The notes: generated by a model from the sequence alone, not told the origin. 62,887 bases of DNA, filler included, from Octopus bimaculoides (GCF_001194135.2; 3 parts of 3 records of this genome joined end to end with filler, not necessarily neighbours in it), one strand, 5' to 3'. Numbered from the whole stretch's first letter, positions 35-20,639 are shown. Numbers and translations: made by a program.

Positions 35-644
35 ATTATATGTATTTCTTCTATCTTAATGAATAAAAATTCTTCGGATAGAATAAATGGGTTAATAGAA
101 ACCAATGTAGCAAAGAACACAAAATAACTGTGGTGTAGTTCCTGTTTTTAAGGCAGGAACTCCTTGAAATTTTGGGTATTTGAGTATATTTAAAAATTTA
201 TATATATATATGTATTCGGCCACATCATGACAAACTGAAAAAAACATAGTAGCCATTTTATGAAGCAGGTGATTATTTTCAACATATAAAATGCAGCACG
301 AGGACCTTGTACGACCGCGTTTTTCTCTTATATCGAAGACAACAGCTTGAAGTGTGTTTTGTTTTTTTATTATATTTCAAAATTACAGTTATGTACACAA
401 CAAGGGTATTTAACCTATTTAACTAGTAAACTGCCATATAACTACGCACATAAATATGTACAAGTATATTTATATCTACGTCTATGTACGTATACATACT
501 GACATACATATATACACGCCCACACACGGTCTAACACATGGTCACACACAGATGTATACGTATATATTTTTATACATACGTACGTCCATCGATTCCTCCA
601 TCCCTCCCTCCCTCCATCCATCCATCCATCCATCCACACACACA

Positions 645-676
<32 letters not shown>

Positions 677-760
677 TATGTATGTAAAATTCGATTAGCG
701 GTCATCTTTGTCTCATGAAGAGATGGTGTCATTCAAAGATATTTAGATACATTATTGCAG

Positions 761-878
761 ACACGATATAAGTAGCATCAGTTAGATTAAACTGAGTAAT
801 CATTATCAGATTTCTTGGTTCTTGTGCAAGGGAAGTCAACAGACCGCTCAAATTTCAATGGGAGAATATAAGGAGTAG
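761..878 (+). other. Candidate non-coding 5' exon of knottin gene A
   Basis: ttgcag|ACACG...AGTAG|gtaatg; the homologous segment 13169-13286 has the same splice-like ends and the same 118-nt length; the downstream ATG exon has its own acceptor, which implies an upstream exon. Confidence 0.4.
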
Positions 879-1469
879 GTAATGTTTAAGCTATTAACTC
901 TTGGTTGCGTGTGGATACGTAAAAAGCGATACAGAGTGTGAAGTGTTGATGATGTTAGTGCTGGTGATTGAATGGACTTTTATTTAATATTTGTATTTGA
1001 TTGGATGGTATTTTTAGGTCGAGAATACGAGAAGTTCGTTGTGGGATTACCTTGATGGTAATCTTATGGAAGACCTAAAATACAAGGTGGTGGCTGGTTG
1101 ACTGAATCAATACCTCACCGGACAAAGTGATTTGCTGTACTTCGTTCGACATTACGCTCTGAGTTGAATCACCAACGAGGTCGACTTTGGATTCCATTCG
1201 TATGGGGTCGAAGAAAAAAAAGGTACCAATCGAGTATTGTGATCGATGAAACAGTACCAGTAGTGTACAAGGTTTACTGTGAGCAAGTAATCCCCTTCTC
1301 CAAAATTTCAGGCCTTGAGCCTGAATCGAATCGATTATTCGTCGTTGTGTTATCTATACTGTAGCTTATGGAAATTCATGATGGAAATAATTTAAGATTT
1401 AAAAAGTGCATGACATGTCTTCAATTGCTTTCTTTCTTATATTTCATATCATTTTTTTTTAGTTGCGCG

Positions 1470-1530
1470 ATGAGAGTTGCACTCCTCTACATTGGCGTAC
1501 TCATTTCATGCACCTCGTCGCAGAAGCAAG
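1470..1530 (+). CDS. Knottin/agatoxin-like precursor copy A, signal-peptide exon (MRVALLYIGVLISCTSSQKQ, phase-1 end)
   Basis: Polypyrimidine tract and AG acceptor at 1461-1462, ATG at 1470, hydrophobic core, donor AAG|gtaaat at 1531. The paralog differs by an in-frame 6-nt indel and 3 substitutions. Confidence 0.85.
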
Positions 1531-1563
1531 GTAAATATTCACCACTACCATCACTTCATAGTA

Positions 1564-2090
1564 TTGGGTTGTCCGGAAAGTTCGTGCCGATTTTCCAAAA
1601 AATTTTCTCACTCAACTCATGTGGTACCCAAACATCGTCGCGATTTGTGTACCCAAGCTTTACGACGGATTTTGATAGGTTGAGGCTTTCTGCCAATTCT
1701 CGGGTTGTGTAATGTGAGTTATTCTCAATTAATGGCTGGATTTGGTCATCATCCGTAGTGGATGGTCTGCCTGATCGCTCTTTATCAATAAGGCTACAAT
1801 CTCCAGCTCGGAACCTTGCGAACCACTTCCGTACAGCTCTTTCGGATAAAGAGACATCAACGTAAACCGCGCATATTTCTTTGGTTGCTTGTGAGGCATT
1901 TTTCCCTTTCCGGAAAAAGAAAAGCATCAAGTGCCGAAAATGAACTTTATCTTCCATTTTAAAGGGTTACAGAATTAACACAGGTTATAGGAACATAAAC
2001 CTTCTTCCACGAAAAGATAGCTTAAACTGTGCTCTAAATGGAGGTGCAGTCAAATCCTATTTTATGGACTCAAAACCATGTTCTAAAATA
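1564..2090 (-). mobile_element. Internally deleted mariner element (N-terminal HTH of transposase) in intron of gene A
   Basis: TA at 1562-1563, then TIR ttgggttgtccggaaagttcgtgccgattt; minus-strand ORF MEDKVHFRHLMLFFFRKGKNASQA...RSGRP...WVPHEL typical of mariner; paralog B has the empty site (catagta|atctcag at about 13936). The other TIR is not visible and is probably in the 2091-2100 gap. Confidence 0.92.
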
Positions 2091-2100
2091 NNNNNNNNNN

Positions 2101-2161
<61 letters not shown>

Positions 2162-3760
2162 CGTGGAGAGTCAAATGATGAGAAATTACTCTCATCAAAT
2201 TTTCATGGACTTCGCAACTGTGGCCAGAAGCCACCAAAGACAAATTAATTTGCAAGAAATCGGAAAACATAAGGAGATATTAAGAAGGGACGGGCACAAT
2301 GTGAAGGTGTCCCCACCCCAATAAGCAATGCAAGGCGAGGAGAAAATAATTATTTACAGAACACTTTCTTGAGGTAATAACGCTTATCAACAATATGATT
2401 TAGGCACGTGATGTTGATAATCCACACAATTGGGGAAACATCGATGGCCATCTCCCCTGAATTGGATTTGCGGCGAGTTTTCTCTCCTGTCTATAATTTT
2501 TAGATGTTTTAATAACCGGCGCTTTGAACAAGTCATCTCCTCCGCACCAAATCACTGCCTACCGGCAAACAGTCGTTGCTTTTCTCTTTAATAGTATGTA
2601 TTATTGATAATGTTTACAACACTATCACTGCTTCTAATTCATATTTGAATTCATCGATTACACATACTTAATCTATGTGCGCTGCTTATTTGCCAGAAGG
2701 ATTCGATTTAGCGGAGTGAGGAAGACTCTCTCAAGGCACCGGGTATTAAAACATTTGAAACTCATAGACAGACGAGGCAATTCTCTCCAAAATCCATTCA
2801 GAAGCGATGGACATCGATACTTCGCCATTTTGTCGCTTATCAACATTACGTATCGGAATCGAATTGGAGGCGAACTGAATCGCTAGTCCATAAGAAACAA
2901 ATAATGTAATAAAAAAATTGCTGGTATGCCACGAAGATGCATACGTAGGAATAAATTTAAATATGAATTAGAAGCAGTGCTAGTCCTGTAGGTATTATCA
3001 GTCAAGCATGCACAATTTACATACCATGCTTGTTTATTGGTAGGCTGCGAAGTAGCGCAGTGGTGATGACACCCTGAAAACACCAAGTTTTAAAAGACAT
3101 GAAAGTCATCGACAGGGGAGAGGACTCGTTGGGGCATACCAGCAGATGATCGATACACTACTTGTATATAGTTATGGACTGGCGATTCAGTTCGGTTCCA
3201 ATTCAGTTCGGGTACGTGATGTTGATAAGCCACAACATGGCGAAACATCGATGTCCATCGCTCCTGAATCCTTCATAATCTCCAGACTTACCTTCAACAG
3301 ACTATTGTATATATCACCACCTTGGGATTTTCACTTCCCACAAAGAAAGTTTGCAAAACAAAAGGAGGAATAACCATATTTGAATGATTTATACCTTCAA
3401 AAGACAATGTTGTTTTCAAAAACGGAATAAATACTCTCTCAGGTTGATAGAAAAGTCGTTGAAGCTAATGGGGCCTAATTTGAATAATAAATAATGATTA
3501 CAAATCGTTGTTGCTTATTCGGTTCTGAGTGACCATTTCATATAGAACAACCAACTATATACATATATGTATACCTATTTTATACATACACTTACATATA
3601 CGCATGCACACACGTGCACACATTATACTCTTGTTATTTAAATACCCACCGAGAGCAGTTGATGTCGTTTGTATATTTCTATACACAAGAAAATATATTC
3701 GAAATCCTTGGAAGTTTTTATACCTTTCAATTCTTGGATATTTTATTATATAATTTCCAG

Positions 3761-3815
3761 ATCGCAATATGTCTGGTGGTAGGTCAGAAACAGATTACGT
3801 TCACATGGATGGAAG
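3761..3815 (+). CDS. Knottin precursor copy A, propeptide exon ((D)RNMSGGRSETDYVHMDG, phase 1 to 2)
   Basis: atttccag|...GGAAG|gtaaga, 55 nt, open in the frame required by the upstream exon; same length and frame as paralog exon 15143-15197. Confidence 0.82.
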
Positions 3816-5360
3816 GTAAGAATTATATTTTGACAATTATTTGAGAATGGCATCATCAATGAGATAAATACTATAATCCTTTTCTTAAACTCTTTTGTTT
3901 TTTTGCTTTCCCATAATTGTATTAGGCTTATCTTGTAAAGTGTGTCTTGTACTTTGTGAAACAGAAGCAAAATAAAATATATTAGACTCACTGTCTGAAA
4001 TATTGACTGAATGAGAGACACAGCAAAAATGCATTTAAAAAAAAATTTACAACACAGGAATTTTCTATAAAGAATATATTTAAAATCTATTTAATCAAAT
4101 AAATACGCGTATGAAATGTAGAAGTAATTTATCTGACATAGATGTTTGAAGGAGGCCATAAAGCTGTAAAAACGCAGGCACTGATAAACAAAGCCTTATT
4201 CGCCAACTGACAATTTATATAGAAATGCTAATAAAGCAAAGATATGTCTTTCACCCTATTATGCTTTCGTCTATGTCTTGGTCTAATAGGTGCGGCGAAG
4301 AACTGTAGTTAGTGTGGTTACTAGTGTTAGTGCTACCAAAATCAGTCATTTGCTCTCTTCGGATCACATCAACTTTTATACCAAATCCAAGAGTCATTTG
4401 CAGCGCTGTTATCACGTTTGAATTTGAATAATATTCCAGAGTAAATTCAAATAGTGATGGATTGTTAAGATTGGTAAACTTGGAAAATGAAATCAGACAT
4501 GGAAAGATTGAATGAAATAGAAACAGATTTTATTGAGGAAAGCAGACGAGAGAAAGTGAAAAGATTTAGAATATTAAAATGAAAATACTGACCCGAGAAG
4601 AATATATGTCGGATCAGGATAATCTTGGAAAATAAATTTACTTCAAAATTTAAAATGCAGGCTGGTAACTCACTAATAGTTTCGACAGCAACTTACACAA
4701 CTTCACACTTATCGATTCCCAATGGAGAATTTGTGTTCTTTCGTTATTCTGTTTAAATTTACAGGGACTAGAATTCTTTATCTCTTTCCTTAGTTGGCCT
4801 TGTTTGGTCTTTAACGTTAATTTATTGTTATTTGATTGTGATTTTGATTGTGATTTTCGTTCATCTTTTGCCAGTCCTACTCTTGTCCTGTTTTTCATTC
4901 ACCGGCTTCGGCGTTATGTAGTTGAATATAGTTTTCACATCCTGTATATTATAATTTTTTCCTGTAACAGTTTATAGATATAAGGTGTGTAAAATGGTAT
5001 ATAAGTGTTCCTGTTGTTTTTGATTATTGATTATATAATCGCAATTTGTTTTAATAAGCTATGACCCGTATAGCTGGTGTTGTTATTTCTTAATTGCATC
5101 TGCAGACATAAAATAAAACGCCACAGCTGTTGAGTGGTAATTCCCAGAAGTGGAAGTAATCTACATGGTAACATGTTATCTTGGAGGGAAAACCGATGAA
5201 TCATTATTGTACTGAAAATTGATCCATTCAAAATTAGTTATATACTTCAAATACACTCGTTTGGAAATATTAGCTCTATCTAATATCAATATCGAAGTAA
5301 ACTTGGAAGTGAAGAACAAACTACATATAGTGACGAAAGATGTCAGACAAATGACATATA

Positions 5361-5740
5361 GGCGCAGGAGTGGCTCTGTGGTAGCTTGCTTACAAACCAC
5401 ATGGTTCCGGGTTCAGTCCCACTGCGTGGCACCTTGGGCAAGTATCTTCTACAATAGCCTCGGGCCGACCAAAGCTTTGTAAGTGGATTTAGTAGACGGA
5501 AACTGAAAGAAGCCCGTCGTATATATGTATGTTTGTGTATATGTTTGTGTCTAGGTTTGTCCCTCCAACATCACTTGACAACCGATGTTGGTGTGTTTAC
5601 GTTCTTTGTAACATAGCGGTTCGGCAAAAGAGACCGAAAGAATAAGTACTAGGCTTACAAAGTCCTGGGGTAGATCTGTTCGACTAAAGGCGGTGATCCA
5701 GCATGGCCGCAGTCAAATGACTGAAACAAGTAAAAGAGTA
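5361..5740 (+). mobile_element. Full-length tRNA-headed SINE (major family, ggcgcaggagtggct... head, gaaacaagtaaaagag tail)
   Basis: A/B-box-like head (ggttcagtccc), central microsatellite and tail shared with copies at 8939, 23330, 41120, 48657 and 62595; absent from the paralogous site at about 18217. Confidence 0.9.
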
Positions 5741-5951
5741 TATTGCTAAAGCTAATTCATATTTTTCGGGATTATACTCGCTGTGCAACATAATTGTCTA
5801 CTTGCAAAATGCAACATGATTGCACAGTAGTGGAAACGATGTTACAAATAGCAAAATAATTTCTAATCTTAACTTCAAAGCAATCGAAATATCCGATGCC
5901 ACTACAGATGCTGTGGCAAGTTTGGAAGCAATAACATGTCAACGCCAAATT

Positions 5952-6597
5952 NNNNNNNNNNNNNNNNNNNNNNNNNNNNNNNNNNNNNNNNNNNNNNNNN
6001 NNNNNNNNNNNNNNNNNNNNNNNNNNNNNNNNNNNNNNNNNNNNNNNNNNNNNNNNNNNNNNNNNNNNNNNNNNNNNNNNNNNNNNNNNNNNNNNNNNNN
6101 NNNNNNNNNNNNNNNNNNNNNNNNNNNNNNNNNNNNNNNNNNNNNNNNNNNNNNNNNNNNNNNNNNNNNNNNNNNNNNNNNNNNNNNNNNNNNNNNNNNN
6201 NNNNNNNNNNNNNNNNNNNNNNNNNNNNNNNNNNNNNNNNNNNNNNNNNNNNNNNNNNNNNNNNNNNNNNNNNNNNNNNNNNNNNNNNNNNNNNNNNNNN
6301 NNNNNNNNNNNNNNNNNNNNNNNNNNNNNNNNNNNNNNNNNNNNNNNNNNNNNNNNNNNNNNNNNNNNNNNNNNNNNNNNNNNNNNNNNNNNNNNNNNNN
6401 NNNNNNNNNNNNNNNNNNNNNNNNNNNNNNNNNNNNNNNNNNNNNNNNNNNNNNNNNNNNNNNNNNNNNNNNNNNNNNNNNNNNNNNNNNNNNNNNNNNN
6501 NNNNNNNNNNNNNNNNNNNNNNNNNNNNNNNNNNNNNNNNNNNNNNNNNNNNNNNNNNNNNNNNNNNNNNNNNNNNNNNNNNNNNNNNNNNNNNNNN
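5952..6597. other. Assembly gap predicted to contain the mature Cys-rich exon of gene A
   Basis: Left flank aligns to 18219-18424 and right flank to 19570-19800; in B the knottin exon 18598-18817 lies between these. Confidence 0.7.
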
Positions 6598-6909
6598 TGA
6601 ATGCAGCGCTCGTTCAACGAACAATATGATTTTGTGAAAAAGAGAAAATAAATTTTCGGGACACAGGCATAGGCAAATCCATCCATCCATCCATCCATCC
6701 ATCCATCCATCCATCCATCCATCCATACATACATACATACAGACAGACAGACATACATATATATATACAGACATACATACATGCATACATACATATGGAT
6801 ATATGTGCATGCGTGTGTGAGTTTGAAGAGATATATCATCCGGGCGGATACCGTGGTGACTCTCAGTTATGTTCCAGGTTACGGTTAACCGCATCGATTA
6901 GTATTTAAC

Positions 6910-8400
6910 GTCAATTTCTACTTTTAGCTTTTGTTCACGCTGTAAATTCTTCCGATGGTTGATTCCATGTCCGCTTTACTGGACGGTTATGTGGTTTGGA
7001 GTGAATTTTAGCAGCATTTATAACGATATAGTACCTGAAGACTTGTTCATCCTCAAAATTAATTTCATCCTGTTTTGTAATTTCATACATTATATTTTTA
7101 TGGTAATTATGACCTACATATGTTTCCACTGCACAGATTTTGGATGCTGCTTCTTCAGGTGTTTGTTAGATAGGGTTCAGTAGGAGGTGATTATGGATTG
7201 ATTTGAAACTGAAATCTGATCTGTTCTTAGGTTTCCGCAGTTGACCTCACATTAACACCATTTGCTGTCCGAAGTCAGGGTTTCATGTAATTATGTCAAT
7301 GCAGGTCTCTCTGTGTATTGTAGTAGATGGGTAAGCTGTAGCCATGTTTTCAAGTGTAGAGCTTGTAGTATAATGTTTTTAGTTGTTAATACATTCATTT
7401 CTTTTGCTGTGTTGTTTATGTTTTGCTGTATACATTGGATAGAATATATTAAGAAGCGCAATGAATTATTTGAGTTCAGAATATGTTTTTCTACCCATCC
7501 TTTCACACTCAACTGTGGGTGGGGCATTGAGTTATCTAGAACTTACTTTAAATTTCTTTTTCTTGTCTTTATGTAAGCATTTTAAGGCCTGTTCAAGTTT
7601 AGTATTAAGTAATTTGTTTCTCGATGTAAATATTTGGTATTATCCTTTTATACATATGTCACCATTCCCCCTCACCCCTTGCCCTATATGGTTTAGCTGT
7701 ACTGATTAATTCCCACTCCGTTTTATAGCTATGATTCTTGTCTTTAATTGACTAGATTAGTTTGCTTAGGCTCGTGCCATTCATCTTTTTTCTATCTCAA
7801 AATGAATTAAAGTGATTAGCCAGCCTTCTCTTGAAGTTATGAGAGTTGACCCCTGTATAGAAATACGTCGTTTACCGGTATATACGCCAAATGTTCATCT
7901 AACGCTTTGTTATAGTATTTCTCGTTTAGCTTAAATATCTTCTCAATAGCCGACAGTCTCATTATGCGGGTGGAAATGTTTGTAACTTGGGTTGGGCACT
8001 TGGGGTGATTGCTTTGTAGTGAATGTATTTAAGGTCTTCATTAGGTTTGTGGTATACTTCGAATAGGCCGGTGTTTAGGTCTAGTGTAACATCTAAGAGG
8101 TTGACTGCGGTGTGTTCCACCTCTGTTGAGATGGAAAGTGCTATACCTTTGAAGAACTTACATAATTTTTTCCTATATCTTTCCATTTCTACATTGGAAG
8201 GGTTATTCAAGGTGAATAATGCATCACCCCTGTATACACTTTCCCCTACTTTTGGAAGTTCCTTGTTTGTGCGAAATAAATATATATTCCTATTAGATCA
8301 GTTACTTGTGTCAAGTTCCTTAATACCATTGTTATGTCGAACATAACCGGACTATCCTTTCTCATCCAGTATTTTCATTCAAATTCTATAATAGACATTC
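6910..8400 (-). mobile_element. Decayed Penelope-like element (RT C-terminus and GIY-YIG remnants)
   Basis: Minus-strand peptides WMRKDSPVMFDITM, NLLDVTLDLNTGLFEVYHKPNEDLKYIH and FLIYSIQCIQQ resemble Penelope RT and endonuclease; many stops and frameshifts. Confidence 0.82.
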
Positions 8401-8938
8401 TGGCAGTTAATACTACGTGTAATTCCTCCGTGGTTGACTCGAAGATTTTCAATGCAAATATGTGCTTTGATACAGTGTGAATGACAACTAATAAAAGGCA
8501 TAAATGTTAAACATCAACTGATGCGGTTAGCCGTGACATGGAACATAGCTGACAGCGACCACAGTAGCCGTCCGGATGATATATCCCTCCAAACTAACAT
8601 TAATGATAATACTCGATTTTCAACGAGCGACAAAGGCAGAATACCAAAATATGGAGATCAACACTGGCAGCACCAAAAGACATTCCATGACCAACCAATC
8701 TTCGACTCGCGGACACTGCTCTAACTCCATTCCGTGTATATGAAGGTTTTATTTTCTGATGAATGAAATAAAAACCAACATATTCCTGATATTCCAATGA
8801 TATAATTTCGCATCTACATTCAACAGCTTATTGGATTATAGTTTACTTTATATTCGAAGATAATAGCAGTACATCAGACAATAGAGATGTGTGGAGACGG
8901 TGATCTTCATCGCTATTCCAATAAATGATGAATATATA

Positions 8939-9122
8939 AGCGTAGGAGTGGCTGTGTGGCAAGAAGCTTGCTTCATAACCAAATGGTTCAAGGTTCAGTT
9001 CCACTGCGTGGCAGCTTTGACAAGTGTCTTACTATAGCTTCGGGCCGACCAAACCGTTGTGAGTGCATTTGGAACACGGAAACTGAGAGAAGCTCGTCGT
9101 ATATATATGTATGTATATATAT
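8939..9122 (+). mobile_element. SINE 5' half (same family as 5361), truncated by gap
   Basis: gcgtaggagtggctgtgtgg...ggttcagttccactgcgtggc...cgggccgacc matches 5361-5520. Confidence 0.88.
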
Positions 9123-9414
9123 NNNNNNNNNNNNNNNNNNNNNNNNNNNNNNNNNNNNNNNNNNNNNNNNNNNNNNNNNNNNNNNNNNNNNNNNNNNNNN
9201 NNNNNNNNNNNNNNNNNNNNNNNNNNNNNNNNNNNNNNNNNNNNNNNNNNNNNNNNNNNNNNNNNNNNNNNNNNNNNNNNNNNNNNNNNNNNNNNNNNNN
9301 NNNNNNNNNNNNNNNNNNNNNNNNNNNNNNNNNNNNNNNNNNNNNNNNNNNNNNNNNNNNNNNNNNNNNNNNNNNNNNNNNNNNNNNNNNNNNNNNNNNN
9401 NNNNNNNNNNNNNN

Positions 9415-10699: not shown

Positions 10700-12400
10700 G
10701 ATATCCTTGTAACTGTAATCCAGAAAATTCAGGATGGAAAAGCAGCTGGAAAAATCTTGATTGTTGGATATCGTACAGGAAGCTAAGCTTCTACCGACCA
10801 TATTTGATCAACCTGTAACAGCGAGCTATCAATAGGAACAGTAGCATACAACACTGGTTAGTTCTAGCAGAGACAAAACTGATCCCCAAATGCAGAATCA
10901 CCCACATGACAAAAAACTACCTGCCAGTTTCATGTCAGAACTTAACGTATAAAATTTATACAGCATGCTTAAACCTCTTCTTCCAAGGCCATTGTGAAAG
11001 TATTAGGTTGTCCGGAAAGTTCGTGCCGATTTATAGTAGCTTGCCTTTCGACTTATTTGCCCTGAAACCACCTCAATTCTGGGAAGAGGGTATTTTCAAG
11101 TTAAAGGTAAGATGGAGACGCACTGTGCAACAAAATGGTTCATATTTGGTTGTTTAAAAATGTAATGGCAAGTATTTATTGACCTTTTTCTTTCCTTTAA
11201 AAATCGGCACGAACTTTCAGACAGCCCAATAATAACATCATTACAGCAGAACAAACAACTGGGAATAAGTGAGTCTGGGGATGTGCCGAACAATTGTTAA
11301 TAAACAAAACTGTAATGGCAGAGGTGCGGGAGCATAGAAGCAACCTAGTCTCAATGTGGCTGGACTACAAGAAAGCCTTTGACTCTTTTCTCCACTCATG
11401 GATGCTAGAAGCCCTTCAACTTGCTAATGTTCCACTGAGCATAGTCAAAGCCATAGCTGACCTGACTTCATCGTGGGCCACCATCTTAAAATTAAACACA
11501 AGGAATGAATGTATTATCACTGATGAAATAAAGTATCCCAGAGGCATTTACCAAGGGGACTGCCTCTCTGTGATGTTGTTTATATTTTCTGTAAATCTCA
11601 TGGCATTCATGTTAAGGAAGTCTGAAGGATATCTCACTGATTCACAAGGAAACAGAAATACCAAAATTACACACCGCTTCTTTGTGGATGACTTGAAACT
11701 ATATGCAAAGGATATGCACGAAATGGAAAAGGAGCCATGACCCGGTTACATTCTCAAAGGATATAGAGTTGGAGTTTGATCAAGATAAATGTTGCTATAT
11801 GATTGTAAAAAGAGGGAAAACTGTAAATCAGACTAGCAACATCTGCATTAACGACTTAACTGTTTCCTCTATATCTGATGAGGAATTTTACAAGTATCTA
11901 GGGGTGGATGAAAACATATGTTACAATGACAGCTGTAACAAATCACGCGTCACTAAAGAATATTACAGCCGAATAAAGAAACTTTGGACTTCAGAACTCT
12001 CTGCATTCAATAGAACTGCGGCCCACAATGTGTTTGCAGTGCCAGTACTCATACCAACATTTGGGCTGCTTGATTGGACGCTTGATGCGATCCGAGCCAT
12101 TCATGTGAAAATCCAGAAGATACTAACAAACACACATAATTTCCACATAAACAGTGGCGTAGACCGCCGCTACTAAAACGAAAACAAGGCGGCGGAGACT
12201 TAACATCGATTCAAACTGCCTTTGAATGTCTTATCATATCCCTTCAGCAACATCTTTTAACTACCAAGTGTTAAAGTGCATCCCTAGACCAAGTTTGCAT
12301 ACATGAGGCTGAGAACATTATATGACTTGGAAGGCAGCTCCTTGAGCAGCATTCCTTGTCCAAAGAAGTCGCTCGGCTCTACCGCAACATATCAGATGAA
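10700..12400 (+). mobile_element. R4/Dong-type (RLE clade) non-LTR retrotransposon RT fragment, pseudogenised
   Basis: CQNLTYKIYTACLN, WLDYKKAFDS, GIYQGDCLS..LF, HRFFVDDLKLY and YKYLGVDE motifs with frameshifts. Confidence 0.92.
11003..11229. mobile_element. 227-bp mariner-derived MITE nested in the LINE RT
   Basis: TIRs ttaggttgtccggaaagttcgtgccgattt and aaatcggcacgaactttcagacagcccaa, TA TSDs at 11001-11002 and 11230-11231; removal restores the LINE frame (..HCES/NNIITAEQ). Confidence 0.93.
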
Positions 12401-12879
12401 TGGATGAGCCTATAATTTTTGCCACAAAGGCAGCTTGTGGGAGGGGATTAAGTCGACTACACCAACCCCCAGTGTGTAACTGGTACTTATTTAACCATGG
12501 CTACGAATAAATGAAAGGCAAAGTCGACCTCGGCGGAATAACTACATCAATAATAATAACAACAGTGACAATACACGTATCAGAGTGTCACTAACGCTGT
12601 ATGTTCTTATTCGTTTCCGGCCACATCATGGCTAACTGAAAAAGCACTGCAGGCAGTATGTGAAACCGGTGTTTGTCGGCATAAGAAATGCAACACATGG
12701 CCTTTGCATTGCCGTGTTTCTCTCTTATATCGAGGACCACAGCTTGAAGTATGTTTTTTTTTTATTACATTTCAACTTTACAGTTATACACACAATAAGG
12801 ACGTTTGATCTATGTAGCATATAAACTGTCATATACCTACACACATAAATACGTAGAAATATATTTATGTATATATCTA

Positions 12880-13150
<271 letters not shown>

Positions 13151-13168
13151 ATGTATGTTTGTGTGCAG

Positions 13169-13286
13169 ACACGGTATAAGTATCATCACCTTGGTTAATC
13201 TGTGTAATTATTATCAAATAGCTTGGTTCTTGTACAACAGAAATATAGAGACCACTCAAATAATAATTGGAGAATATAAGAAATAG
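13169..13286 (+). other. Candidate non-coding 5' exon of knottin gene B
   Basis: gtgcag|ACACG...AATAG|gtaatg, 118 nt, as in the A homolog. Confidence 0.4.
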
Positions 13287-13836
13287 GTAATGTTTAAACT
13301 ATGAACTTTTGGTTGTGAGTTGATATGTAAAAGCGGGTTGAATGGACATTTATTTATATGGTTGTTATTGGTTGGATGGTATTTTTAGGTTGAGAGTAGA
13401 AGTTTTCTGAGAGTTGCGTTTGCTTTTGAGGTAATTTTGTGGAAGACCTAACAAACACCCTAACAAACACTAATGTGGCTGGCTGGCCGAATCGTTAGCT
13501 CAGCGGGCGAAGTACTTTACAGTACTTTGTCCGTCATTACGCTCTGAATAATATCACCACCGAGATCGAATTTGGGCTTCACCCTTACGGGATCGAAGTA
13601 AAGAAGTACCAGCAATGTACAGGGGTGGATGTAAGCAAATAGTCCTCTTACCCAAAATTTCAGGCCTTGTGTATCAATCGAAACGATTATTCACCGATGA
13701 TGTCATCTATATTGTAGCTTAAGGATGTTCTTTTCGCTTTTATGATTGAAACAATTTAAGATTTAAAAAGTTAGGTAAAAGTGCATGACATTCTTCAGTT
13801 GCTTTCTTTCTTATATTCCATATCATTAGTTGCGCG

Positions 13837-13903
13837 ATGAGAAGAACTCTTGCACTCCTCTACATCGGCGTACTCATTTCATGCGCCTCGTCGCAGAAGC
13901 AAG
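13837..13903 (+). CDS. Knottin/agatoxin-like precursor copy B, signal-peptide exon (MRRTLALLYIGVLISCASSQKQ)
   Basis: Acceptor cattag| at 13828-13829, ATG at 13837, basic N-terminus, hydrophobic core, A-S-S/Q cleavage-like site, donor AAG|gtaaat. Confidence 0.88.
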
Positions 13904-14150
13904 GTAAATATTCACCACTACCATCACTTCATAGTAATCTCAGAGGCGATGAAAGAAGAGAAGAAAGAGAGAGTGAGAGAGAGAAGGGGAGATTAAGAGA
14001 AGCGGGGTGAGTCATTGTTTTTTATGTAGTCAAATGGCGCGAGATTACTCTCTTCAGCAGCATTTTCTATCTTCCATAATATTTTCATGAGGCCCATGCT
14101 ATTCTTGTGTTCATCTGTATCATACAATAATATGCATTATCGCTCATTTA

Positions 14151-14545
14151 TGAAGTGGTATGGAAAGGTCCCCGGACTAGTTAAAAGGGGCGACAACAGA
14201 TGGCAGCAAACAGTTGGGCCAGTTACTGACCTTCATTAGGCAGTGTACCGAGAGACATCGTTGTATTTACTCCGCAAGTTTAGAAATTTGTGTTTATGTG
14301 ATCACGTGTATGCTGTAATCTGCGATATTTGTCGTAGACATGAAGTTGGAACAAAGAGCCAACGTGAAATTTTGCGTTAAACTTGGAAAGTCTACTACAC
14401 AGACATTGAACATGCTTCGGCAAGCTTACGTTGAAGAGGCAATGGGTCGTACGCAATGATTCGTGAGGTACGGGTGCTTCAAAAGCGTAAGAACACCCTT
14501 CGAAGACGCAGACCGATCTGGAAGACTTGTCACAAGAATCGTAAA
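14151..14545 (+). mobile_element. Truncated mariner (second family) 5' end in intron of gene B
   Basis: TA then tgaagtggtatggaaaggtcccggac TIR-like start; ATG at 14340 gives MKLEQRANVKFCVKLGKSTTQTLNMLRQAY...RSGR with an internal stop. Confidence 0.85.
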
Positions 14546-15142
14546 GAACTACCTTAATTTCAACACTTCAGATGTAACCCAGGAATAGTTGTCAAACGCG
14601 TCTTCATTAGATTATATAATTTGGATATGAAACTAGAATGAATCCATTTATAAAAATATATGCAAGTAATGACCGAGTTAAGAAATCCCAGGCCTTTTGG
14701 CTTTGCATAATTATTTCAGACGATCTAAGACTTGCTTCGTTCTTTAAACTGTGAATGCGTATGAAAATGCAAATTACGCAGACAAGAAAGATATAGAGAG
14801 GCCACAATACCATTAAATAGTTTTCACATTATTCGTACATAGTTTATGGAATGACGATCCAGTTCGGCTCCTAATCCTGGTCAGTTACGTAATGTTGATA
14901 AACCATAAAGATGCCGAAACATCGATGTCCATCGTTCCTGAATCCTGCATAATCTTCAGAGCTATCCCCAATAAACTAGCGTATATATCACCACTTTGAG
15001 AACTCGGTAACAGCTCTGGTTATTCAAATATCCGCTGAGACTAGTTGGGTCATTTGTATATTTCTATACACAAGAAAACATACTCGAAATCTTTGGATGT
15101 TTATATACTTTAAAGTTCTAGGATGTCTTATATCATTTCCAG

Positions 15143-15197
15143 ATCGCAGAATGTCCGATGCTAGGCCAGAAACAGATTATGATCGTTTCGATGGAAG
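15143..15197 (+). CDS. Knottin precursor copy B, propeptide exon ((D)RRMSDARPETDYDRFDG)
   Basis: catttccag|...GGAAG|gtaaga, 55 nt, phase 1 to 2. Confidence 0.85.
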
Positions 15198-15339
15198 GTA
15201 AGAATTATATATTGACAATTGTTTGCGAATGGCATCAGTAATAGTGAAATAATTATGATAATTCTTTTATTTTTTTTCTATGTGTGTTTGTCTCAGAGAA
15301 TGTCATAGTAACTATCTAAAATATTTTCTGAATCAGTGA

Positions 15340-17745
15340 AAGTGGAAAATGTTTTGTAAAATTGTTGTGGAAGGATTCCAATCATCCCACTTGTGACTGA
15401 AAATGGACTGAGCCATTGTTATAAATTAAAGATCTGTGAGCGATTGGCAGTTCAGGTTGGTAAGCAGTTCACTGTGAGCCACGAAAGAGAGCGTTGCGTC
15501 TTATGTAATAGTAGTAATAGTGCATCGTGTAAATACTTCCTTTCTCCAATGCTTCGTTATATTATATATCCAATACAAGGATATAAAGGTTGTGATGAGT
15601 TGTTCGAAGATGTTTAAAATTATTTTAGTACGAAAACATCGTTTCAACAGAGAGAACTTATTGGTTTTCGTGGTGCAATTGCAACAGCAACAGCAGCAAA
15701 TGCAACAGCAACTACAGCAGCAGCAACAACAGTTACAACAGCAATTACAGCAGCAGCAGCAGCAACTACAACAGCAACAACAAGAACACCAACAGTTTCA
15801 GGAATTAATGTTGAAGAAGTCTGAAAATACTTCAGATTCGTACCCGCGAGACAGCGTAGCAAATTCGACTGAAGAATTCATTTATAAACCAGAAGAAGGA
15901 ATTACCTTCTCTGCATATTTACGAAGATACGAAGAATTCTTCAAAGAAGAGCGTGAAAGTTGGTCCGACAAGAAAAAAGTACAAGTAATTTTAAGAATGT
16001 TATGTCCTACTGAACGGGAAAATATAGTAAATATATTCTAGCGAAGAAACCAGGTGAAATTTGTTTCGGGGAAACAATTAATGTTGAAGTGCTTAATCTT
16101 TATTCAAGGGCTTACTGCAAACAAAGATGCAGATATACGTTCCCGGATATTAAAAGAATTAAAACAGGACCAAAAATTAAAACTGCAGGCAATAGCAGAA
16201 GAATGTCAAAGGATAATAAATCTATGACATGACGTAAATAAAACTGAAGGGAAGGATTGCTCTCAGATTCAACCATCTCAGACAAAATACGAACGAGCCT
16301 AAAAGAAAATTTGTCTATGTAAAAATGAATAACACAAACGTAAAGTTAGAACTGGATACAGTTTGCGACATCTCAATAGTTAACACAGATACTTGATAAA
16401 GATCGGGTGATCTAGATTAATCGAAACTTCGAAAATCGTCCGCGGCGTTTCAGGAAAAAAGTTATATTTTAAGGGCGAATTGATAGGTAGCATTACGTTA
16501 CGCGAAAAAAATCCTTAAAAGCTAAGGTTTTTGTGTTAAATAATATCACAAATATATTCGGAACTGACTGGATGGAATTATTTAAACCATAGGACCTCCC
16601 CATAAATCATTTCTGCAAAAATGTGAATGATTTTTCCTACAGTAGAAATAAGTCATGAGACGAATTAATAAAAAAATTTAAAATATTTTTCCTGAAGTTC
16701 TGACTGATAAATTAGGTCTCTGCACCAAAATGAAGGCGCAGTTTCAACGAAAAGAAAACGCCATGCCAGTTTTTAAACAAAACCGAATTGTAGCGATCGC
16801 AACGTTAGAACAGATAAAGTTAGAGTTACAGAGACTATAAAAAATTGGAGTTATCAAAACTGGGGAATATAGTCAATAACCATCACCAACTGCGTACGCT
16901 AAGAAAAAACAATAATAAAAGCAGAGTGTGTGCTGATTTTCCCACTGGTTTGAACGAATGTCTTAAAACGTGCTACTATCTGCTACCTGCCCCGGAGGAT
17001 ATTCTTGTGAAATTAAATGGTGGCAAGATATTGTCTAAATTCGATCTCTCTGACGCGTACCTATAAATCAGAGTAGAGGATGAATGCTCTAAATACTTAA
17101 CAATTAACACACATAAAGGGCTGTATAAATTCAACAGGTTACCATTTGGCTTATAAGTAGCACCAGCGATTTTTCAACAGATTATGTATGCAATGTTTGT
17201 GGACTGTGAATTCGCAATTCCATATCAGGTGATATTCTCATTAAAAGCAAATCCAGAGATCAACACGTAGAGCTCGTAAAATGTGTATTCGAAAAAATTA
17301 GGGATTACTACTTTATTTTAAGTGACGAAATGTGTGAATTTTGTTTACCGAAAGTGAGATATTTAGAACAAATCATTGACAGAAATGGACGTCGACCAGA
17401 CCCGTGGAGGGCAGACGCAATTAAAAATATGTCCTAACCGACAAATATATCAACGTTACAAGCAGTTTTAGGATTGGTAAATTATTACCAAAATTATATT
17501 CCAAATATGCATAAGGTGAGAGTTCCACTAAATAATCTGCTGAAAAAAGATATGAAATGGAATTGACAGGAAAATTGTCAAAAGTCATTTGACGAAAAAA
17601 AAAAAAAAAATACTCACATCTGATTTGTCGTATGCACACTTTGATCTTGCAGCGGAGAATATTGTAGCTTCAGACGCTTCTGAGTATGGCATAAGAGCAG
17701 TAGTGCTACACCAATACAAAGATAGTAACATGAAGGTGATGCACA
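15340..17745 (+). mobile_element. Decayed Gypsy LTR retrotransposon (poly-Q gag, protease remnant, RT/RNaseH) in intron of gene B
   Basis: gag-like FIYKPEEGITFSAYLRRYEEFF; RT motifs RVCADFPTGLNECL, LSKFDLSDAYL, TINTHKGLYKFNRLPFG; RNaseH VASDASEYGI; multiple stops. Confidence 0.92.
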
Positions 17746-17891
17746 TTATTCACATTATTTACATTTGACGGATACTTGTCCTCATCTTGTTTGTTGTTAA
17801 CGCAACATTTCGGCTGATATACCCTCCAGCCTTCATCAGGTGTCTTGGGGAAATTTCGAACCTGGGTTCTCATTCCTAAGGTATTTTTCGA

Positions 17892-17947
<56 letters not shown>

Positions 17948-18010
17948 GAACCCGGAATCTTGGGGCTAGTAGCCCGCGCTCTTAAGACCTACGCCATATG
18001 TCAATGGGCA
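17745..18010 (-). mobile_element. Composite SINE: tRNA-like head, (AAT)n and a body carrying a hammerhead-like motif
   Basis: Minus strand: tggcgtaggtcttaagagcgcgggctactagccccaagattccgggttcg head, AAT repeat, then body also present at 20905-21058. Confidence 0.8.
17798..17846 (-). ncRNA. Minimal type-I hammerhead-ribozyme-like motif
   Basis: Minus strand aagacac-CTGATGA-a-GGCTG-gagggtatat-CAGCC-GAAA-tgt-t-gcgtt: core, 5-bp stem II and stem I pairing; one extra A before stem II and a probably decayed ACGT stem III. Confidence 0.65.
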
Positions 18011-18597
18011 TAGCCGTTGAATGATAATTCCAGAAGTGGAAGTAATCTAAAAGGTAACATGTTTGCTTGGAGGGCGAACTGATGAATCATTATTGTACTG
18101 AAAATTGATCCATTCAAAATCAGTTACATACTTCACATACACTCGTTCGGAAATATTCGTTCTATCTAATATCAATATCGAAGTAAACTTGGAAGTCAAG
18201 AAAAAATTATATATATAGCTAAAGCTAATTCATATTTTTCGGGATTATACTCGCTGTGCAACATAATTGTCTAATTGCAAAATGCAACATGATTGTACAG
18301 TAGTGGAAATGATGTTGCAAATAGCAAAATAATTTCTAATCTTAACTTCAAAGCAATCGAAATATCCGATGCCACTACAGATGCTGTGGCAAGTTTGGAA
18401 GCAATAAAATATCAACGCCAACTTAAAAAAATAAATAAATAATCAGAAAGTAATCTCACAGAAAAGAAACCACATTTTAGAGAAAACGTATATAAAAGGA
18501 TATAGATATAATGTAGTTACAATATTCCTGGCGTATTAGGATCGTCCAAATTTCTAATTACGATGTTTATGTATTTTTCTGTTTTCTCTTTTTACAG

Positions 18598-18817
18598 AGG
18601 CAGATATAAGAGAAATAGTTTGTGTTTGAATTGGCAGATTCCATGTAAACCCAATAAGAACAGTCCAGATAATAATTGCTGTAAAACTCAAGCTTGTGTA
18701 TGTAACCTCCTATGGCGTGACTGTTTATGTACACACACAGTTTCAAGAACAAATATTGTAATACATAATTATATATGCTTATGTATTTGTTTGTTAGCTT
18801 CTTGTTTTTATGTGTAG
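18598..18817 (+). CDS. Knottin precursor copy B, terminal exon: RGRYKR site then 8-Cys ICK/agatoxin-like domain (NSLCLNWQIPCKPNKNSPDNNCCKTQACVCNLLWRDCLC...)
   Basis: Branch-like CTAAT at 18554-18558, long pyrimidine tract and acceptor tttacag|A in phase 2, matching the previous exon; Cys spacing C-X6-C-X10-CC-X4-C-X-C-X6-C-X-C; TAG at 18815-18817 followed by AATAAA. The 3' end of the CDS is less certain. Confidence 0.87.
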
Positions 18818-18870
18818 TGTGAACCTGTTCTTTCTACGTGGTTGGAGATTATTCTAATTCACATAAAAGT

Positions 18871-18876
18871 AATAAA
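18871..18876 (+). promoter_or_regulatory. Candidate polyadenylation signal of gene B
   Basis: AATAAA 54 nt after the stop codon; the AT-rich context makes chance occurrence possible. Confidence 0.45.
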
Positions 18877-19271
18877 ATAACAATTAAATTACAAAGTGAA
18901 GATGCAAGAATATCTTTGCGTTCATTCGTTGTACAATTGTTCGTATATAAACGTTCGTTGCGTAAATCGTAATAAATACGTTTGCATACAAAAATTCATT
19001 GTGTNNNNNNNNNNACTGCCATGAGGCGGGAAAGTATACTAGTCCTTATATATTTAATACTCTAAATTTAATACTCAACATTTCATATATTCAGTAAGAC
19101 ATTCAATACTTCATTTCATTTTACTATTTATATTATATATTCCATATTCTATATCCTACATTAATTTTATAAGAATACAAATAAAACATAAAAAACAGAC
19201 AGTGTTGGAACTCTTTTAAATAATATATTCCTCTATACACGATCATATAAAACCCTTTTTTATATTTTTTA

Positions 19272-19308
<37 letters not shown>

Positions 19309-20639
19309 CTAAGAAGGGTATTGGATTCAACCAAACCCAAAGATACAGGTAATACCGAGTAAGTGCTGTATACCGGTTAGTTTTGCCCCATTCGTTGTAT
19401 AAACAAGAGTGGGGAATACAACATAGGTCGTGTATTAGCGTGTGTATGTATAAAGATAGAAAAGGATAAAGAGAACAATGGCAAAATTAGAAATATATTT
19501 TATGGATAAAGTCTTACAGCTATATATATATATAAATGCGTTGTAGCATGCACGAAACAAAGATTGTTCTTTGAATGTCACGCTCGTTCAATGAGCAACA
19601 TCATTTTGTGAAAAAGAGAAAAAATTTAAGGGACACGTGCATAGTCAAATACATACATACATACATATATGGATATATATGTGTGTGTACGTGTGTTTGA
19701 GTTTGGAGAGTTATTTCATCCGGGCGGATACCGCAGTGACTCTCAGCTATGTTCCAGGTTACGGCTAATCACATCGTTTAGTAAGTAACGTCAATTCCTG
19801 TGTATTTGAACATTTTGAAAATCAGTATAAAATGTGAAACCGGTGAAAGCTTTAAATATATTAATAAAAAATATTTTAAAATATTCTCAGTGCATTTAAA
19901 ACTTTATTTTTCCTATATATATANNNNNNNNNNNNNNNNNNNNNNNNNNNNNNNNNNNNNNNNNNNNTTAATTAATTAANNNNNNNNNNNNNNNNNNNNN
20001 NNNNNNNNNNNNNNNNNNNNNNNCGTGTGTATATTGCCTATGTTTCTGCGTGTTGTGTGCGTATATATTGTGTGTTTTTATGAGTGAATATTGTGTGCGA
20101 GGCGGGATGGGGGTGAGAGAATTGAGGGCTGAAAGTTATTGGGTGCTAGTGTGTTTGGAATGGGAAGGTACGTGTGAGTATATGTGCATGTGAGTGTGTG
20201 AATGGTGTGTAGTGTGGATACTGAGTTGAACACTGTGTATGGGTGTTTATATAATGGTGTGTGTGGTGAGGGTACTGCGTTAGGCAGTGCACAGATGCGT
20301 GGGTGGAGGAGGAGAGGCAGTTAAATGTGGGAGGTGTTTGTAAGTGTGTGTAGGGATGGTTTTAGATGAAAAGAAGTGACGAATTAAGACCATAAGGAGC
20401 AAATGAATGAAGAAAGAAAGCTAATTTTTGTTCACGGTCGAGGCTAGAGTCTGGGTGACCTTTGTGCAAAGACAGTCCGAACACAGACAGTTGTAGCGAA
20501 TGACCAGTTGAGCGGAGTGGTGCGATACGGGGGTATCCTTGCCAAGCTTTATGTTTCGGAGATGTATATATGTTTATATGCATAAATATTATACACATTA
20601 TACATAGATAAATAGATACATACATACATACGTACTTAC

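Follow-up and report, generated by a model that had tools for sequence, protein, structure and literature searches.

Where is the third coding exon of a cysteine-rich peptide gene that an octopus reference assembly carries only in part? The gene in question, copy A, begins at position 1470 of a window of 62,887 nucleotides (filler included) from Octopus bimaculoides, corresponding to CM046622.1 of assembly GCA_001194135.2, and is the first of a tandem pair whose second member, copy B, occupies positions 13837-18817. Each gene of this kind would encode a short secreted prepropeptide in three coding exons: a signal exon, a 52-55-nt propeptide exon and an exon for an 8-cysteine, knottin-type domain. 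The first two exons of A are sequenced, and a run of 646 N lies at the predicted site of the third. We propose, with a probability of about 0.65, that copy A is a complete gene, predicted from comparison with its paralogs to have its last exon, its 3′ untranslated region (3′ UTR) and the end of its intron 2 in this unresolved scaffold gap. For the comparisons, loci L001 and L002 were taken from Hi-C assembly GCA_001194135.2, while L003 is the CCWamide locus of O. sinensis. L001, which begins at window position 3837, was identical to the window at 16087/16087 compared positions, N runs included.

Sequenced exons of copy A and the gap behind them

The features of A and of its counterpart B that bear on the question are as follows (window coordinates; a slash marks an exon end).

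217-1469, plus strand: region upstream of copy A, collinear with 12618-13836 upstream of B; repeat families D9, D11, D16 and D17
1470-1530, plus strand: signal-peptide exon of A (61 nt), ATG and then ...CAGAAGCAAG/GTAAAT; phase-1 donor CAAG/GTAAAT
1531-3760, plus strand: intron 1 of A, with a Mos1/mariner-type fragment, a 10-N gap, (GA)n at 2101-2159 and an inverted repeat
3761-3815, plus strand: propeptide exon of A (55 nt), TTTCCAG/ATCGC...GGAAG/GTAAGA; phase-2 donor GAAG/GTAAGA
3816-5951, plus strand: sequenced 5′ part of intron 2 of A; D6, D8 and D15
5952-6597, no strand assigned: assembly gap of 646 N, length estimated; predicted site of the end of intron 2, knottin exon 3 and 3′ UTR of A
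6598-6919, plus strand: 3′ flank of A, collinear with B 19572-19799 at 81-83%; D10
13837-13903, plus strand: signal exon of B (67 nt), phase 1
15143-15197, plus strand: propeptide exon of B (55 nt), phase 2, AG/A (Arg)
18598-18817, plus strand: exon 3 of B (220 nt), with the RGRYKR cleavage region, the 8-Cys core, a 28-residue C-terminal extension and a stop
18425-19571, plus strand: interval of B that matches the gap of A (1147 bp), holding B exon 3 and a 10-N gap at 19005-19014

Exon 1 of copy A encodes MRVALLYIGVLISCTSSQKQ plus one nucleotide, and exon 2 encodes DRNMSGGRSETDYVHMDG plus the AG of a split Arg/Ser codon. The coding sequence up to the end of exon 2 reads ...CACATGGATGGAAG, with the A-specific junction sequence ...TACGTTCACATGGATGGAAG. 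The start codon and the reading frame are undamaged, as are the two donors and the acceptor; the intron phases are those of B (1 after exon 1, and 2 after exon 2, behind the AG of the Arg codon). The two exons proposed for A in the first-pass annotation, made from the sequence alone, were thus confirmed with canonical splice sites. Exon 1 is identical to that of B at 59/61 aligned positions; it carries 2 substitutions and one in-frame 6-nt deletion, which, as had been stated, is the sole coding indel between A and B. For B the complete precursor can be read, in the order MRRTLALLYIGVLISCASS / QKQDRRMSDARPETDYDRFDGRGRYKR / NSLC..., with the mature region NSLCLNWQIPCKPNKNSPDNNCCKTQACVCNLLWRDCLC... 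and the 8-Cys core CLNWQIPCKPNKNSPDNNCCKTQACVCNLLWRDCLC at 18623-18730. The spliced product of B corresponds at 100% identity over 113 residues to XP_052831636.1, which is annotated as "uncharacterized protein LOC128250515".

BLASTN and the repeat finder concurred on the collinearity of A and B, and the matching blocks are listed below.

A 217-1563 with B 12618-13936: 69% identity (68.6% by BLASTN)
A 3155-3327 with B 14826-15001: 80%
A 3628-3886 with B 15014-15271: 80%
A 5122-5329 with B 18009-18215: 89%
A 5739-5951 with B 18212-18424: 96%
A 6598-6694 with B 19572-19666: 81%
A 6771-6919 with B 19651-19799: 83%

The last three blocks lie around the gap. Its left flank (5739-5951) and its right flank (6598-6694, followed by 6771-6919) match B with strand and order preserved, and the matches bracket B exon 3, in agreement with what had been claimed for the flanks. 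The size of the gap was then compared with that of the corresponding interval in B. A segment of about 530 bp downstream of B exon 3 (18990-19529), AT-rich and itself interrupted by 10 N, is missing from paralog C; without it, about 618 bp would be expected vs. the estimated 646 N, so that this segment explains most of the difference between the 646 N of A and the 1147 bp of B. Since both flanks are non-coding (intron 2 on one side, 3′ flank on the other), continuity across the gap is carried by order, orientation and size alone.

A six-frame scan of the sequenced window found a single 8-Cys framework, that of B itself, and a tblastn search of the window, with the peptides that exon 3 encodes in B, C, D and the canonical octopus CCWamide gene as queries, returned nothing beyond B's domain. 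As the sole 8-Cys frame in the sequenced window belongs to B, the mature exon of A is either in the gap or absent, and has not been displaced within the window. The proposal that this exon lies in the gap is thus favored, indirectly, by collinear flanks, a fitting gap size and the lack of another 8-Cys frame in the window.

Several observations weigh against a complete copy A. The intact coding sequence amounts to 116 nt, which is too short to exclude a young pseudogene. The differences of its exon 2 from that of B (12/55 positions, i.e., 43/55 identical; 38/55 identical to C) are mostly non-synonymous, and the exon is no better conserved than the flanking intron. No A-type protein was retrieved, nor any transcript or contig carrying exon 3. 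Finally, the newer Hi-C assembly GCA_001194135.2, in which a filled gap might have been found, keeps the same 646 N; the 10-N gap at 2091-2100 is likewise unchanged there.

These points bear on the main rival reading, namely that A is a truncated or decaying pseudogene, its knottin exon lost or disrupted and the gap holding repeats only, which we consider rather unlikely. Exon 3 of A is unobserved; A alone carries the 6-nt signal deletion, the mariner fragment in intron 1 and a short interspersed element (SINE)-like insertion in intron 2; and the changes in exon 2 relative to B and C, most of which alter the amino acid, give no sign of purifying selection. Yet the coding indel is in frame and every splice signal and the frame are preserved, the gap flanks are collinear with B, and 646 N fits an intron remainder of about 174 nt plus an exon of 208-280 nt. 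Moreover, exon 2 is equally poorly kept between the annotated genes B and C, so rapid propeptide change characterizes the family and does not indicate decay. Taken by itself, the exon 2 pattern of A fits relaxed constraint and diversifying selection equally.

With a complete copy A as the preferred reading, the missing exon is a limitation of the assembly and not a new biological mechanism. The assembly probably broke at 5952-6597 because this part of the unit is near-identical among the paralogs. It had also been suggested that automated annotation would truncate or miss A. NCBI models exist for B, C and D, and no protein with the exons of A was returned, which is in line with that suggestion; the negative is a weak one, as a word-index protein search with the 41-residue peptide of A gave no candidate and missed even B, with which it shares seven 5-residue words. 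The same search with B returned only B and C. Seven consecutive 5-residue words of the A peptide recur in B and in C, and a blank from this search for short queries cannot be read as absence. No contigs encoding the B exon-3 open reading frame (ORF), from Logan or elsewhere, are on record.

Paralogs in tandem and the repeats around them

The first-pass annotation had predicted at least two tandem genes. This was borne out and exceeded when neighboring sequence was inspected: by sequence comparison there are at least four clustered paralogs on CM046622.1, with C and D at most 25 kb downstream (about 7-19 kb past the end of the window).

L002 13503-18381, plus strand: paralog C, XP_052831633.1, a 119-residue NCBI model
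L002 23737-26063, minus strand: paralog D, XP_052831628.1, 134 residues, about 5.4 kb beyond C

The unit of C is collinear with those of A and B. In intron 2 of A, collinearity with C extends over 4043-4877 and collinearity with B over 5122-5329 and 5739-5951; the SINE-like insertion at about 5330-5738 is missing from B, and the intron-2 sequence common to A and C is missing there too. D is the most CCWamide-like member of the cluster (LCAGWHRPC...). A 35-nt pattern taken from the signal exon occurs twice in the window, at A and at B, vs. 0 expected from 200 shuffles, and once more at C.

Could A and B be one gene seen twice? An assembly artefact, in which one gene was placed twice in a row, either as its two haplotypes or through mis-scaffolding of its contigs, would be compatible with the fragmentation around the two copies (five N runs in 20 kb) and with the 96% identity of the segment next to the gap. 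However, identity is 68-80% over most of the unit, and the two copies differ by a coding indel, by 12/55 positions of exon 2 and by their insertions, mariner and SINE-like in A and a retroelement in intron 2 of B. About 5.7 kb of unrelated sequence separates the A and B units, an arrangement that is kept in the Hi-C assembly, and A shares with C intron-2 sequence that B lacks. We regard an artefact as very improbable. Collapsed alleles or haplotigs were likewise rejected on the grounds of divergence and different transposon content. On sequence evidence, A and B are true tandem paralogs and not alleles, as had been proposed, given the 68-96% identity along the unit, the different transposon insertions and the intron-2 sequence that A shares with C and not with B.

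Conservation differs along the units. Between B and C the signal exon is identical at 67/67 nt and the first 33 nt of intron 1 at 33/33 (13837-13936 in the window, 13503-13602 in L002); the first 33 nt of intron 1 of A (to 1563) are identical to both, and the remainder of the units is 68-85% identical. This near-invariance of the signal exon together with 33 intron nucleotides points to gene conversion or strong constraint. Exon 2 is 69-78% identical between copies, below the 78-91% of the flanking intron, and the mature peptides are about 35-40% identical with changed loop lengths.

Upstream of the start codon, an AG acceptor at 1461-1462, conserved and immediately 5′ of the ATG of A, suggests an untranslated 5′ exon farther upstream. 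In paralog C the NCBI model joins an upstream exon to the equivalent acceptor, and the first 11 residues of that model, which come from this upstream exon, probably belong to the 5′ UTR. A search of the window for a counterpart of the annotated 5′ exon of C gave microsatellite matches only.

The remaining features of the units are repeats and mobile elements.

1556-2090, transposase helix-turn-helix on the minus strand: Mos1/mariner-type fragment, found in copy A only and ending at the 10-N gap
2091-2100: gap of 10 N in intron 1 of A, between the Mos1-type fragment and the (GA)n tract
2796-2893 and 3172-3269: inverted repeat within intron 1 of A (I2 of the repeat finder)
6816-6944 and 8471-8599: 129-nt inverted repeat, 76% complementary, in which the 3′ end of the unit recurs 1.5 kb downstream of A; counterpart in B at 19700-19799

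Within the mariner fragment, the ORF at 1556-1957 on the minus strand matches Pfam HTH_48 (E = 5e-21). Around the 10-N gap the sequence (1563; 2122-2208) is collinear with B and C, and no coding frame spans it. A short element at about 11003-11232 seemingly bears the terminal sequence of the mariner fragment at either end, the two in opposite orientation, judged by eye only. Two copies of the SINE-like repeat were noted (5450-5542 vs. 9030-9122, 82%), the second of which (8940-9122) adjoins a gap at 9123-9414; an ARAGORN tRNA scan of the SINE-like repeats (about 5330-5738 and 8940-9122) found no tRNA-like structure. At the boundary of the unit, the 129-nt inverted repeat may represent a foldback structure or the two ends of a transposon. 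In intron 2 of B, 15520-17750 is a decayed retroelement, missing from A and C at that place; a poly-Gln tract and a match to DUF7083 occur in its first ORF, and its further pol-like frames are broken by stops. Reverse-transcriptase (RVT_1) fragments occur in the spacer between A and B (11294-12176). Spacer sequence of a similar kind lies behind C (L002 18687-20100), and window 10653-10771 matches L002 18687-18814. The tandem unit may originally have included a retroelement remnant (RVT_1).

Relationship to the CCWamide and agatoxin-like peptides

To which family do these genes belong? Five features define the CCWamide/agatoxin-like peptide (ALP) family (Thiel et al., 2021; PMC8557429): the precursor is short, it contains eight cysteines, an aromatic residue stands between the sixth and the seventh of these, the C-terminus is aromatic and amidated, and there are three exons, the third of which follows a phase-2 intron that interrupts a basic codon. 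The family is found throughout protostomes, and neither a receptor nor a function has been assigned to it (PMC13311285). The precursor layout, consisting of a signal peptide, a non-conserved propeptide, a basic cleavage site and one C-terminal Cys-rich peptide, is present in B, C and D, and A shows its signal and propeptide parts. Cysteines in B and D are spaced C-6-C-10-CC-4-C-1-C-6-C-1-C, which is the spacing of Crassostrea CCWamide; that of C is C-4-C-6-CC-4-C-1-C-6-C-1-C. The eight Cys columns are invariant in alignment A4, which includes the canonical octopus CCWamide, a gene distinct from the cluster (P0003/P0005). An aromatic residue stands between Cys6 and Cys7 in B (CNLLWRDC), C (CKSLWTGC) and D (CNVYWTAC), and B also has the W after Cys1, the P after Cys2 and the CNL..W between Cys6 and Cys7 of Crassostrea CCWamide.

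Gene structure was compared using the O. sinensis ortholog as the source of the canonical exons.

Canonical CCWamide (O. sinensis): exons of 70, 52 and 157 nt, phases 1 and 2, split codon CG/A (Arg)
D: exons of 70, 55 and 280 nt, phases 1 and 2, split codon CG/A (Arg)
B: exons of 67, 55 and 220 nt, phases 1 and 2, split codon AG/A (Arg)
C: exons of 67, 52 and 208 nt, phases 1 and 2, split codon AG/A (Arg)
A: exons of 61, 55 and ? nt, phases 1 and 2, split codon AG/?

Exons 1 and 2 together come to 122 nt in both B and the canonical gene. In every complete codon (B, C, D and canonical) the last intron lies in phase 2 within the Arg codon at the cleavage site, matching the description in PMC8557429.

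To evaluate the similarity beyond the framework, we built a family hidden Markov model (HMM) from 30 published CCWamide/ALP peptides (supplement of PMC8557429) and used Cys-preserving shuffles as the background (mean 11.5-13.1 bits, standard deviation about 5.5). B scored 32.9 bits, reached by 1/1000 shuffles, and D scored 38.2 bits, reached by 0/1000. An hhalign comparison of B, C and D together against the family gave a probability of 97.2% (E = 3.6e-11). For Pfam PF02819 Toxin_9, with a gathering threshold of 21.3 bits, the scores were 23.5 bits for the canonical octopus CCWamide and 22.2 bits for D, both above the threshold, vs. 15.1 bits (E = 0.03) for B and 10.9 bits for C, both below it. 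D was also sub-threshold for Pfam Conotoxin (23.5 bits vs. a cut-off of 25.1). An alignment of the B and C knottin domains alone by MAFFT mis-registered Cys1 and was not used as a search profile.

Other results argue against the assignment. The aromatic-Gly-(K/R/stop) amidation motif is missing at the canonical position in B, C and D: after Cys8, B reads THTVSRTNIVIHNYICLCICLLASCFYV*, C reads KDADSSCAIIAMHNYICILICLLAFLLHVVWTFYM* and D reads VESFFYKFRSGATT...NPK* (asterisk, stop), while the canonical octopus CCWamide ends ...CVNKLWGG*. The family HMM score of C is weak, 16.1 bits, reached by 28/1000 shuffles. A phmmer search with the B knottin domain against 1.84 billion proteins at E<=0.001 returned only B, D and one spurious repeat protein, and no canonical CCWamide. 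The AlphaFold2 model of the B domain, built on a shallow alignment, is of low confidence (predicted local distance difference test score, pLDDT, 67.7), with two short strands at 26-29 and 38-41; its best Foldseek matches in the PDB are knottins (ASIP 2KZA, delta-atracotoxin, psalmotoxin), not significant at E>=2.7.

Could the likeness then be convergence, with the octopus genes forming an independent cephalopod knottin family of toxin or defence peptides on the same cystine-knot framework? The lost amidation motif, the shorter loops and weak HMM score of C, and the failure of the phmmer search to reach a canonical CCWamide would all agree with this, and short Cys-rich domains converge easily. 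Against it stand the scores of B and D, far above those of Cys-preserving shuffles, so that the similarity goes beyond the cysteines. The cluster and the canonical octopus CCWamide gene also agree in the number of exons, in both intron phases, in the Arg codon that is split and, very nearly, in exon lengths, and B, C, D and the canonical peptide all match one Pfam model, Toxin_9 (B and C below threshold). Convergence appears improbable to us. As B, C and D have no C-terminal amide motif, the cluster is treated as an offshoot and not as CCWamide proper: in our sequence-based assignment it is a divergent, non-amidated and lineage-specific branch of the CCWamide/ALP family. The initial label of a knottin toxin or defence family proved too generic in view of cysteine spacing, profile score and exon structure. 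The pattern of change in these genes resembles that of toxin and defence families.

As to its distribution, no B-like paralogs were found beside the O. sinensis CCWamide gene in L003. The genomic locus of the canonical CCWamide gene of O. bimaculoides (P0005) is not on record. No description of a cephalopod-specific cluster of divergent, non-amidated CCWamide-like paralogs was found in the searchable literature.

Likeness to known peptides, maturation and meaning

Among known systems, the closest layout is that of spiralian CCWamide precursors (Octopus vulgaris/sinensis LOC118768477; Crassostrea gigas XP_011427282.1; PMC8557429), which likewise have a non-conserved propeptide and one 8-Cys peptide. 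The likeness extends to the gene structure (three coding exons, intron phases 1 and 2, a basic codon divided by the last intron), and in B to the oyster Cys spacing, W, P and CNL..W. Unlike these precursors, the octopus cluster is multi-copy, its propeptide and mature regions diverge fast, and in place of the aromatic-Gly-(Lys/Arg) signal it carries an extension of 28-47 residues past Cys8 in B, C and D, with a hydrophobic end in B and C. Over the final 20 residues, B and C are strongly hydrophobic (mean Kyte-Doolittle values of 2.1 and 2.5, respectively), unlike D. These tails read IVIHNYICLCICLLASCFYV in B (within 18731-18817) and ICILICLLAFLLHVVWTFYM in C (within L002 18277-18381). Such a tail could be a membrane anchor, a glycosylphosphatidylinositol (GPI)-type signal, or a translated, AT-rich former 3′ UTR exposed by loss of the ancestral stop.

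With arthropod ALPs and spider U8-agatoxin the octopus genes share the 8-Cys framework, the CxC...CxC arrangement, the aromatic residue between Cys6 and Cys7 and the gene structure. ALPs differ in a shorter second loop (C-6-C-6-CC) and in their end, ...GLFQKW-amide. Omega-Aga-IVA and AgRP have the cysteine pattern C..C..CC..CxC..CxC. The octopus domain resembles them in this pattern, and Foldseek places the ASIP knottin 2KZA first for the B model, at a non-significant E = 2.7; agouti has ten cysteines vs. eight in the octopus domains. A PDB sequence search with the mature region of B gave no match, and Pfam Agouti PF05039 matched neither B (E<=10) nor C, D or the canonical CCWamide (E<=1). The only link to Agouti is the UniRef name of the canonical O. 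bimaculoides CCWamide fragment (P0005), "Agouti domain-containing protein". Conotoxin superfamilies show the same mode of evolution, with a near-invariant signal exon, a moderately diverged propeptide, a strongly diverged mature peptide and tandem paralogs; they have another cysteine framework, and the likeness is one of mode, not of homology.

By analogy with the family, maturation of the octopus precursors would begin with removal of the signal peptide. Next, a convertase would presumably cut off the propeptide at the basic site whose codons span the phase-2 intron, RGRYKR in B (KR) and RR in C. Four disulfides would tie the 8-Cys domain into a knot of the omega-agatoxin/agouti type, and the product may act extracellularly as a secreted ligand or channel modulator. 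The ancestral aromatic-Gly-basic amidation signal would have been lost, with the frame reading on into the extension.

For work on this animal, these results would mean that the O. bimaculoides reference assembly, its Hi-C version included, hides a peptide-coding exon of at least one member of the cluster. Gene counts and peptidomic or transcriptomic search databases derived from it would contain copy A truncated or miss it. The divergent CCWamide-like cluster itself, a moderately interesting finding, appears of greater interest than the missing exon. The ALP neuropeptide scaffold has also been recruited into spider venom (Sturm et al., 2016; Skinner et al., 1989; cited in PMC8557429 and PMC13311285), and the cluster may offer a concrete place to ask about recruitment of the CCWamide/ALP scaffold to new roles. 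In octopuses this scaffold may have been turned into tandemly expanding, fast-diversifying knottins, secreted or membrane-tethered, with a possible role in venom, in defence or as tethered channel modulators; we put this forward as a tentative and, on balance, unlikely idea. If true, it would independently mirror what happened in spiders, where ALPs were recruited into venom as U8-agatoxin.

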